Source of the DNA: Macrostomum lignano
Lineage: Eukaryota
Direction: 5' to 3'
DNA length: 64,000 nt
Assembly (NCBI GenBank): GCA_002269645.1
Contig: NIVC01002226.1
Location: 32,705-96,704 of the forward strand
Shown here: one piece after another, positions 58,801 through 59,744 of the stretch
How positions within the stretch are numbered: the first letter of the stretch is position 1
Layout: the number at the start of each line of letters is the position of its first letter
The notes under the pieces: generated by a model
What the model saw: only the letters and a program-made list of their open reading frames with translations
Databases searched by the model: none
Told to the model about the DNA's origin: nothing
Program-made: the position numbers and the translations under genes

Positions 58801-59744
58801 TGAGGCCTGCTGCTTGCCCAGTCCAAGTCGCAGGCGGCCACGTGACCAACCCGGCGAACTCCAGCCACGCCGAACATTGGCGGGAGGCTCCAGGCAGCGC
58901 CCAGAGCGGCGCACAAGGCGATGAGAGCCGTGGCGACCGAGTGATTGAACGGCCTGTTTTTTGTTACCATGCGGCACCGGAGGAGCGACAGGCCGGTCAA
59001 CAGATTGATGTTGAACAGACCCAGGGAGCTCGTGCCAAAAACGTACCTGTTGAGCAAATAAAAGTACGAGTACTTAACATATAACATCGTCCCACAACCA
59101 GCGCTTGGGCAGTTCTGCGCCATTCTGCTGCCTCCTGAACTTACCATAGTGACCACTATAAACACCAAACTATAGCAACTACTACGAAGTATGAACACCA
59201 TAGCAGCTGTCATAAACACCATAGCAACCACTATCAACACCATAGCACCCACTATCAACACCATAGCAACCATTATCAACACCATAGCAACCACTATCAA
59301 CACCATAGAAACTAATATGAACACCATAGCAACCACTGTTAACACCATAGCAACCACTGTGAAAACCATAGCAACTAACCATGAACACCATAGCAACCAA
59401 TTTGGACACCATGGCAACCACAGTTCCATGTCTCACCAGTAGCACCAGCCAATTTGGAAGGCCCACTGTCCAGCCAGCCAAGCCGAGGCCAGGTTCAAGG
59501 ATGCCGCCACCACAACGCAGATGCAGTTACTGAAGAAGCTTGAGCACAACAGCATCATTGAAGGATTGCGCAACGATGGCGAGGCCAGAATGTTGTATGC
59601 GGAGAGACCATTGGACATCAGGCTCACGATGAATACAGCAGTGCACCAGCAGGCCATGGCATAGTGACGCCATGTGCTTGCATGCTCTCCTGGGTTTGGT
59701 GCGATGACGTCATTTTCCGGTGTTGCGTAACTCATTTTGGTCAT
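52874..59744 (-). CDS. Divergent opsin (class A GPCR with retinal-binding Lys), by eye closest to peropsin/RGR/retinochrome types; exons 59744-59437, 59046-58710, 54525-54432, 53310-52874 (391 aa)
   Basis: In-frame GT-AG joins (phases 2, 0, 1); seven hydrophobic segments; TM1 SN, LRNP, TM3 Cys and ECL2 Cys (CDLDW), TM5 LP..I..SY..I, TM6 FVICWTPYA, TM7 LLAKT (K296 codon 53191-53189), NAEFR helix 8. The subfamily is tentative. Confidence 0.88.
53385..54405. repeat. 18-bp repeat CCCCTCTGTAGCTGGCGC (opsin intron 3)
   Basis: Direct reading. Confidence 0.93.
54790..58695. repeat. ~3.9 kb (CTAA)n/(CAAA)n microsatellite (opsin intron 2)
   Basis: Direct reading. Confidence 0.96.
59145..59425. repeat. 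21-bp repeat ACCATAGCAACCACTATCAAC (opsin intron 1)
   Basis: Direct reading. Confidence 0.85.

Follow-up and report, generated by a model that had tools for sequence, protein, structure and literature searches.

The opsin gene and its surroundings

The window analysed here, a stretch of 64,000 nucleotides of Macrostomum DNA, carries an intact four-exon gene for a class-A G-protein-coupled receptor of the animal opsin family, which is under purifying selection. The gene occupies positions 59744..52874 of the minus strand, the strand of all its features given below, and has a coding sequence of 1176 nt (391 aa) interrupted by introns that all have GT-AG borders. An earlier reading made from the DNA letters only (hereafter the sequence-only reading) had singled out the interval 58820-59050, which corresponds to most of exon 2.

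Exon 1 (59437..59744) contains the ATG and encodes the N-terminus, transmembrane helix 1 (TM1, with N55), TM2 (N83, A90, and N94), extracellular loop 1 (ECL1), and the start of TM3 (C110), in the numbering of bovine rhodopsin used throughout. It ends with the donor TACTG/GTGAGA in the codon of W112 (phase 2), which is also the donor position of the corresponding exon at a homologous Macrostomum lignano locus (L001, 8363-8661; see below). Exon 2 (58710..59046), bordered by the acceptor ctcaacag/G and by the donor CAT/GTAAGA after residue 229 (phase 0), encodes TM3 from Y113 (codon TAC, 59045-59043) through G121 to L134-R135-C136 (R135 codon CGG, 58979-58977), followed by TM4, ECL2, and TM5 (Y223), and is 71% identical to exon 2 of M. 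lignano. The ECL2 residues of interest are R179, R180, V181, H183, C187, D188, and D190. The Val181 codon, which occupies the place of the ancestral counterion Glu181, is GTT at 58848..58850, exactly where the sequence-only reading had placed it (58850-58848), and it is followed by the codons of C187 (TGC, 58832-58830), Asp188 (GAC, 58827..58829), which is the proposed replacement counterion, and D190 (GAC, 58823-58821).

Exon 3 (54432..54525) is only 94 nt long and encodes intracellular loop 3 and the N-terminal half of TM6 (IRRSRVSGLLSTSGNEVRRNRQFVIHVLAMIG), ending with the donor ATTG/GTGAGT in codon 259 (phase 1). It forms an island between an (AACT)n array of about 3.9 kb and a 1 kb minisatellite, is easily overlooked, and was detected solely through the M. 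lignano homologue. A three-exon model of 382 aa, in which exon 2 was joined to an acceptor at 53377, was dropped when the M. lignano protein exposed the exon at 54525..54432 and showed that the real acceptor lies at 53310. Exon 4 (52874..53310) supplies the rest of TM6 (F261 and C264-W265-T-P267-Y268), ECL3, TM7 (L292, A295, K296, and S302-A303..Y306), helix 8 (N310-A-E312-F-R), and the C-tail up to a TGA stop. The codon of Lys296, the lysine that forms the Schiff base with retinal, is AAG at 53189..53191.

The noncoding parts of the gene are dominated by repeats. Intron 2 (4.2 kb) consists almost entirely of the (AACT)n array (54792-58696; TTAG on the gene strand), and intron 3 is mostly the minisatellite, which has an 18-bp unit (53377-54392). 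Intron 1 contains a minisatellite (59180-59400) with units of about 21 bp that include GGTTGCTATGGTGTT, one copy of which resembles a half-site of the RFX X-box. Such X-boxes, which could hint at ciliary expression, are not enriched in the window (3 matches against 1.6 expected, with 21 of 100 shuffles giving 3 or more), and none of the sites of the window is conserved at the M. lignano locus. Upstream of the gene, a 12-bp repeat (GTCTGTCTCAGT) is present in about 45 copies (59775-60309) and begins some 30 nt from the opsin start codon, so that a microsatellite makes up the proximal promoter or 5'UTR region.

On the plus strand, the window contains the C-terminal exons of a gene for a UBR4-type E3 ubiquitin ligase (1-23540; PF13764, E down to 1e-58) and an RtcA-like gene for an RNA 3'-terminal phosphate cyclase (29067-33728; PF01137/PF05189), both broken up by many microsatellite-rich introns. 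The RtcA-like and opsin genes are separated by a 15.2 kb satellite (34189-49392) in which a 25-bp unit (GAGTCACTTCAACATCAGTGAGACT) is repeated about 605 times with 92% match, and an (GAGGA)n array of about 1.6 kb (62402-64000) reaches the end of the window.

Conservation in a Macrostomum lignano homologue

A HMMER search over 1.84 billion representative sequences returned one close relative of the window protein (67% identity over a fragment), everything else being at most 30% identical. The relative is M. lignano BOX15_Mlig015728g1 (PAA90994.1), together with UniProt fragments, and its locus (L001; NIVC01000099.1, 8363-21408) has four exons with splice positions and phases identical to those of the window gene. 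The deposited M. lignano models are incomplete: PAA90994.1 begins within exon 2 and lacks TM1 to TM3, and the UniProt entries A0A1I8H915 and A0A1I8J5A0 continue past the donor of exon 3 into intron sequence. The full coding sequence is contained in the L001 locus itself.

Identity between the two proteins amounts to 59% overall and to 70% in the core, and they share Y113, the L-R-C triplet, R179, R180, V181, H183, D188, and D190 as well as L292, K296, the S-A-x-x-Y motif of TM7, and the N-x-E motif of helix 8. A second M. lignano copy (P0152) has an identical ECL2. At the DNA level, the similarity between the window and the M. lignano locus is confined to the exons (72-77%). The ratio of nonsynonymous to synonymous substitution rates (dN/dS, NG86) is 0.13 for the seven-helix core, an approximate value given that dS is saturated at about 1.6, compared to 1.06 for the C-tail. 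The retinal pocket is more conserved than the core as a whole, with 27 of its 31 residues identical in the two Macrostomum proteins as against 70%.

These observations bear on the possibility, raised in the sequence-only reading, that the unusual residues stem from an assembly error hiding a Glu at 181, or from a gene that evolves neutrally. The introns are crowded with microsatellites, and no annotated public protein is identical to any of the seven variants of the gene model that were considered, which would suit such an artefact or a pseudogene. However, the reading frame is open over four exons with canonical GT-AG sites. An assembly error is excluded because the homologous M. lignano locus encodes Val181 by a different codon (GTC instead of GTT) and has the same D188 and D190, and neutral decay is excluded because of the core dN/dS of about 0.13, the restriction of conservation to the exons, and the conserved splice sites. 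The artefact or pseudogene explanation is thus refuted by the homologue and the exon-only conservation, and we consider it almost certainly wrong.

Residue register, counterion sites and opsin group

The window protein matches the Pfam family 7tm_1 with E = 2.3e-18. Among the chains of the PDB, HMMER ranks human cone opsins and bovine rhodopsin highest (E of about 1e-10), and ECL2 aligns to them without gaps. The residue register was also derived from a MAFFT alignment of 111 sequences, which includes bovine rhodopsin (a reference sequence verified by its length and landmark residues) and a further 108 opsin matches bearing K296; the counts given below refer to these 108 opsins. The assignments are N55, N83, A90, N94, C110, Y113, G121, and L134-R135-C136 in TM1 to TM3; V181, A186, C187, D188, L189, D190, W191, and Y223 in ECL2 and TM5; and F261, W265, P267, Y268, L292, A295, K296, S302-A303..Y306, and N310-A-E312 from TM6 to helix 8. 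K296, in the context LLLAKTG, is in register in both the PDB and the MAFFT alignments, and the spacing between P171 and C187 is 16 residues, as in bovine rhodopsin. The opsin hallmarks K296, C110, C187, G121, W265, Y268, and A295 are all kept, the Cys110-Cys187 disulfide pair is present, and the retinal pocket is normal.

An AlphaFold2 model built from 71 sequences (pLDDT 88.7, pTM 0.87) has seven helices plus helix 8, and its β-hairpin in ECL2, at residues 166-169 and 174-177, corresponds to bovine residues 178-181 and 186-189. The best structural neighbours found by Foldseek are squid rhodopsin, cone opsins, jumping-spider rhodopsin, and bovine rhodopsin. HMMER, MAFFT, and AlphaFold2 thus agree on the register, and the central description in the sequence-only reading, namely an opsin with Lys296, Tyr113, Val181, Asp188, and Asp190 and with nonacidic residues near position 94 and at 292 (N94 and L292), is borne out. 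Features that had not been pointed out before are the loss of D83, N302/P303, and Q312, the degenerate G-protein motifs, and a gene structure of the xenopsin type.

According to the literature, the commonest opsin counterion is E181, while E113 serves in vertebrate visual opsins and in the Leptochiton xenopsin, E94 in jellyfish, and D83 in crustacean Opn5b (PMC12221356); the coral anthozoan-specific opsins II (ASO-II) use Cl- together with E292 (PMC12401545). The window protein is nonacidic at all five of these sites (N83, N94, Y113, V181, and L292), so that every published counterion solution is vacant. Since D83 is also absent, the case for an unconventional counterion is strengthened. Of the aligned opsins, 91 have E and 7 have D at position 181 (98/108 for the two together), and position 83 is D or E in 90/108. 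Only 5/108 have no acid at 94, 113, 181, and 292, and just one of these five, an unnamed ENA sequence (P0130), also lacks D/E83. The amphioxus 'pinopsin-like' sequence P0041 combines V181 with Y113 and keeps D83.

Position 188 is S, T, A, G, or C in 104 of the 108 opsins and D in 2, and in the window protein this rare Asp188 occurs together with the loss of E181. Two unnamed ENA sequences (P0011 and P0061) have Asp188 together with Glu181. Position 190, on the other hand, is D in 57 of the 108 and in bovine rhodopsin as well. None of the TM helices has an acidic residue that is conserved in both Macrostomum sequences, and the conserved acids of the extracellular half are limited to D188, D190, D200, and D/E280. 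Near the chromophore on this side there are only D188 and D190, and D188 is, besides D190, the sole conserved acid of the ECL2 strand that covers the retinal. The preceding strand, β3, reads GVAGVRRVG in place of the motif GWxxYxxEG. The proposal in the sequence-only reading of a new counterion at D188 or D190 keeps its premises, with no acid at 113, 181, 94, or 292, and is partly supported, with D188 as a candidate; D190, being a common residue, is a poor candidate.

The cytoplasmic and network motifs are also changed, with D83N, E134L, Y136C, N302S, P303A, and Q312E (NxQ to NxE), at positions where N302 and P303 are found in 100/108 and 102/108 opsins, respectively. R135, Y223, M257, W265 within the CWxPY motif, Y306, and a Cys after helix 8 are retained.

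To place the gene among opsin groups, intron positions were determined by exact spliced alignment and transferred to the common alignment. Three introns are common to the window gene and its M. lignano homologue: a phase 2 intron in codon 112, a phase 0 intron after residue 229, and a phase 1 intron in codon 259. The last two occur at the same position and phase in sequences from Mya arenaria (P0009) and Brachionus plicatilis (P0053). Of these, P0009 shows 39% identity to a labelled Argopecten xenopsin and P0053 shows 50% identity to a Brachionus sequence labelled xenopsin, both from the Rawlinson et al. 2019 source data; a side-by-side reading suggests that P0015 is the Maritigrella xenopsin of the same file. 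Xenopsins are reported to share two specific introns, the first of which lies near the second c-opsin intron without coinciding with it (PMC5648526, PMC7529461). Because two of its introns match those of the clam and rotifer xenopsin-type genes and these published xenopsin-specific introns, we file the gene as xenopsin-type.

The c-opsin of the sea urchin Diadema was computed to have a phase 1 intron in codon 121 and phase 0 introns after residues 232 and 312, and bovine rhodopsin has introns at the same positions and phases. The window gene has none of the c-opsin introns (121, 232/233, 312/313), and membership in the c-opsins was rejected on the intron positions. A peropsin-like gene of the nemertean Tubulanus has different intron positions again, and an RGR/retinochrome photoisomerase (E181; tetraopsin/Group 4 clade) was rejected on account of V181 and the xenopsin-type gene structure.

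Sequence similarity, in contrast to gene structure, is nearly flat across the groups and does not by itself place the protein in the xenopsins. In BLASTP, the top bivalve xenopsin-type matches (109-118 bits) are only a few bits away from amphioxus and urchin c-opsins (about 100-114). Hidden Markov models of the clades do not separate the groups (154-164 for xenopsin, 159-160 for c-opsin, and about 125 for r-opsin), and a neighbor-joining tree of 105 opsins puts the Macrostomum pair among long branches with copepod opsins, which we judge to be long-branch attraction. Homologue searches with the full protein or the core returned nothing, and a search with the alignment as query gave only bivalve relatives of the Mya sequence, none of them named xenopsin. 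As a point against the assignment, Rawlinson et al. reported macrostomids to be without xenopsin in transcriptomes (PMC6805122), which may reflect low expression. Overall, we read the gene as a very divergent xenopsin-type opsin on the basis of its structure.

The nearest known counterparts of the gene include the xenopsins (Ramirez 2016, Vocking 2017, Rawlinson 2019, Doring 2020), in particular the divergent 'xenopsin B' sequences of flatworms. As in xenopsins, the host is a protostome (a flatworm), TM6 has the motif MIGAF..W.PY, and residue 113 is Tyr, as in many members of the group; N83 and a motif other than NP are found in rotifer xenopsins too. Unlike in xenopsins, however, where position 181 is E or D (22/22 of the other xenopsin-type sequences, with D in the polyclad xenopsin B) and three sequences also have E113, the window protein has Val181 and Asp188, a combination limited to the Macrostomum pair in the xenopsin-type alignment. 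The identity to any xenopsin is only 23-29%, the β3 motif is unrecognisable, and the WDSxIY and ALPE motifs of polyclad xenopsin B are not found.

Candidate counterions and signalling output

With the known sites vacant, the window protein probably either uses Asp188 as a new counterion site or senses ultraviolet (UV) light. The residues on their own cannot choose among D188/D190, chloride, a UV pigment, and a light-independent receptor.

The reading that we favour, tentatively and at somewhat less than an even chance, is that Asp188 replaces Glu181 as the counterion in a predicted xenopsin-type pigment with altered coupling. In this scenario, retinal would be bound via Lys296, the opsin pocket being ordinary in other respects. 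On strand β3 of ECL2, the carboxylate of the ancestral Glu181 would have been lost and an Asp gained at 188 on the adjacent strand β4, next to residue 181 and the C11=C12 bond of retinal. The negative charge of Asp188 would then keep the Schiff base protonated, amounting to a displacement of the counterion within ECL2.

Asp188 is favoured because residue 188 adjoins Glu181 and the retinal C11=C12 bond and because the bovine G188D mutant forms a pigment. Models based on rhodopsin crystal structures place the 188 side chain beside both of these groups, and in Opn5L1 the Cys at this position makes an adduct with retinal (PMC8871353). G188D, the only red-shifted mutant at 188 (509 nm), accumulates meta I, which the authors explain by the introduced Asp stabilising the Schiff base in its protonated form (PMC8871353). 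The mutant resembles the window protein in having a functional side chain that adjoins the C11=C12 bond and Glu181. However, G188D and the Cys188 opsins keep E113 and/or E181, or D292, and in the photocyclic Cys188 opsins (Opn5L1 and coral AtAntho2c; PMC5871776, bioRxiv 10.64898/2026.05.24.727572) the cysteine drives thermal re-isomerisation and has no counterion role. A Cys188 is also found in xenopsin B1 of the polyclad Prostheceraeus vittatus (DAB27257.1; PMC6805122 supplement 1), which has S-Y-Y in place of DRY and Phe306, and which is possibly a natural photocyclic or non-signalling xenopsin. A counterion at an unconventional site with no acid at 94, 113, and 181 is also known from crustacean Opn5b (Rimicaris RhOpn5, PMC12221356), an opsin of another group, in which the counterion is Asp83, a residue that is Asn here.

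A number of observations count against Asp188 as the counterion. From the geometry of the hairpin, R179 is the expected cross-strand partner of D188 and could neutralise it. S186, the usual link between an ECL2 counterion and the Schiff base, is Ala in the window protein, and the hydrophobic surroundings provided by V114 and L292 would favour an unprotonated, UV-absorbing Schiff base. The human rhodopsin mutants G188E and G188R form no pigment (cited in PMC8871353). Finally, no flank similarity was found between the window gene and the M. lignano locus (synteny was not detected, with exons and simple repeats as the only matches), and the relative may be either an ortholog or an old paralog.

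Some of these residues would be at home in a UV pigment with no effective counterion, whose Schiff base would be unprotonated in the dark and absorb at about 360-380 nm, D188 serving to tune the spectrum or to stabilise a protonated photoproduct. Besides the five nonacidic sites, the hydrophobic V114 (found in 1/108 opsins) and L292 and the replacement of S186 by Ala are consistent with such a pigment, and so is the fact that bovine G188D acts mainly on meta I, which is an all-trans state. UV sensitivity is known from Antho2e, a coral opsin that has no counterion (PMC12401545). However, a carboxylate that is conserved, rare, and next to the polyene would be likely to increase the pKa of the Schiff base. 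The loss of E181 is, moreover, unnecessary for UV sensitivity, given that known UV opsins such as Opn5 normally retain this residue, which agrees with PMC12221356. We regard a UV pigment as unlikely, yet as a serious candidate.

The basic residues of ECL2 raise the question of an anion. Chloride or another anion could be held by R179, R180, and H183, comparable to the site in coral ASO-II or the long-wave cone Cl- site. All three residues are conserved in both Macrostomum sequences, H183 being present in 8/108 opsins and the six commonest residues at 179 (V/G/T/I/A/Q) and 180 (L/P/N/F/Y/M) including no basic one. V181 aligns with the His of the LWS opsin that we take to be its Cl--binding His. 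The ASO-II opsins resemble the window protein further in having K296, no acid at 94, 113, and 181, and no E/DRY (Sakai et al. 2025, PMC12401545). They differ from it, however, in a conserved E/D292, which takes part in Cl- binding and is the photoproduct's counterion, whereas Leu292 and Val114 fill this site with hydrophobic side chains here. Membership in ASO-II was rejected in view of L292 in both Macrostomum sequences and the wrong phylum and clade. The arginines, in turn, may simply pair with D188 and D190. A bound anion is very unlikely in our estimate, and bound chloride, which the sequence-only reading had listed among new counterion solutions, is no longer new, since ASO-II opsins already use it (PMC12401545).

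Whichever group balances the Schiff base, the output of the protein is a separate matter. In the favoured reading, conformational switching is probably kept with altered coupling, as D83, E134, N302, and P303 are replaced and R135, Y223, M257, W265, and Y306 are preserved. The possible output would be a weak or unusual coupling to G proteins, or an isomerase-like pigment that binds all-trans retinal, as suggested for flatworm xenopsin B. NPxxY and the tripeptide are strongly modified in the window protein as they are in several flatworm xenopsin B proteins (Doring et al., PMC7529461), and such proteins have been suggested to act as photoisomerases (Rawlinson et al., PMC6805122).

It is also conceivable that the protein is not a signalling photoreceptor at all, being instead a photoisomerase or store of retinal, or a light-independent receptor that merely keeps K296. 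The joint occurrence of D83N, E134L, Y136C, N302S, P303A, and Q312E is suggestive in this respect, given that a role as photoisomerases or an inability to signal has been proposed for the xenopsin B proteins with modified motifs (PMC6805122, PMC7529461). The C-terminal VxPx motif is absent as well, in a C-tail that evolves neutrally. However, R135, Y223, M257, CWxPY, Y306, and the Cys after helix 8 are kept, ASO-II opsins signal without E/DRY (PMC12401545), and the residues of the retinal pocket are more conserved than the remaining core. As judged from the residues, a photoisomerase or non-signalling role is possible and not strongly indicated, and we consider it quite unlikely. It concerns the output rather than the counterion, and could be combined with each of the other three explanations.

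A more specific form of the Asp188 proposal combines these elements: Asp188 would be a sixth natural counterion, moved from Glu181, in a xenopsin with a rewired D83/N302 network and DRY motif that may function as an all-trans-binding, reverse or bistable pigment or as a photoisomerase. Such a pigment type may be envisaged because it is the protonated all-trans (meta I) state that is preferentially stabilised in bovine G188D. We hold this version to be possible but doubtful.

In the literature searched, covering Macrostomum opsins, counterions of flatworm xenopsins, and position 188, neither the gene nor a natural Asp188 opsin without E181 is described, and no characterised orthologue turned up. 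Schiff-base protonation decides between visible and UV sensitivity of opsins and also shapes their activation, and each newly found counterion solution has altered views of opsin evolution and yielded optogenetic scaffolds. The present gene is a natural and conserved case in which all known sites are empty and a rare Asp lies beside the chromophore, making a displacement of the counterion within ECL2 directly testable. The genus Macrostomum includes the laboratory model M. lignano, for which RNA interference and transgenesis are available. The gene would be the first of the xenopsin type to be recognised in macrostomid flatworms, for which earlier surveys reported none, and, if Asp188 is indeed its counterion, it would represent a sixth solution to the counterion problem.

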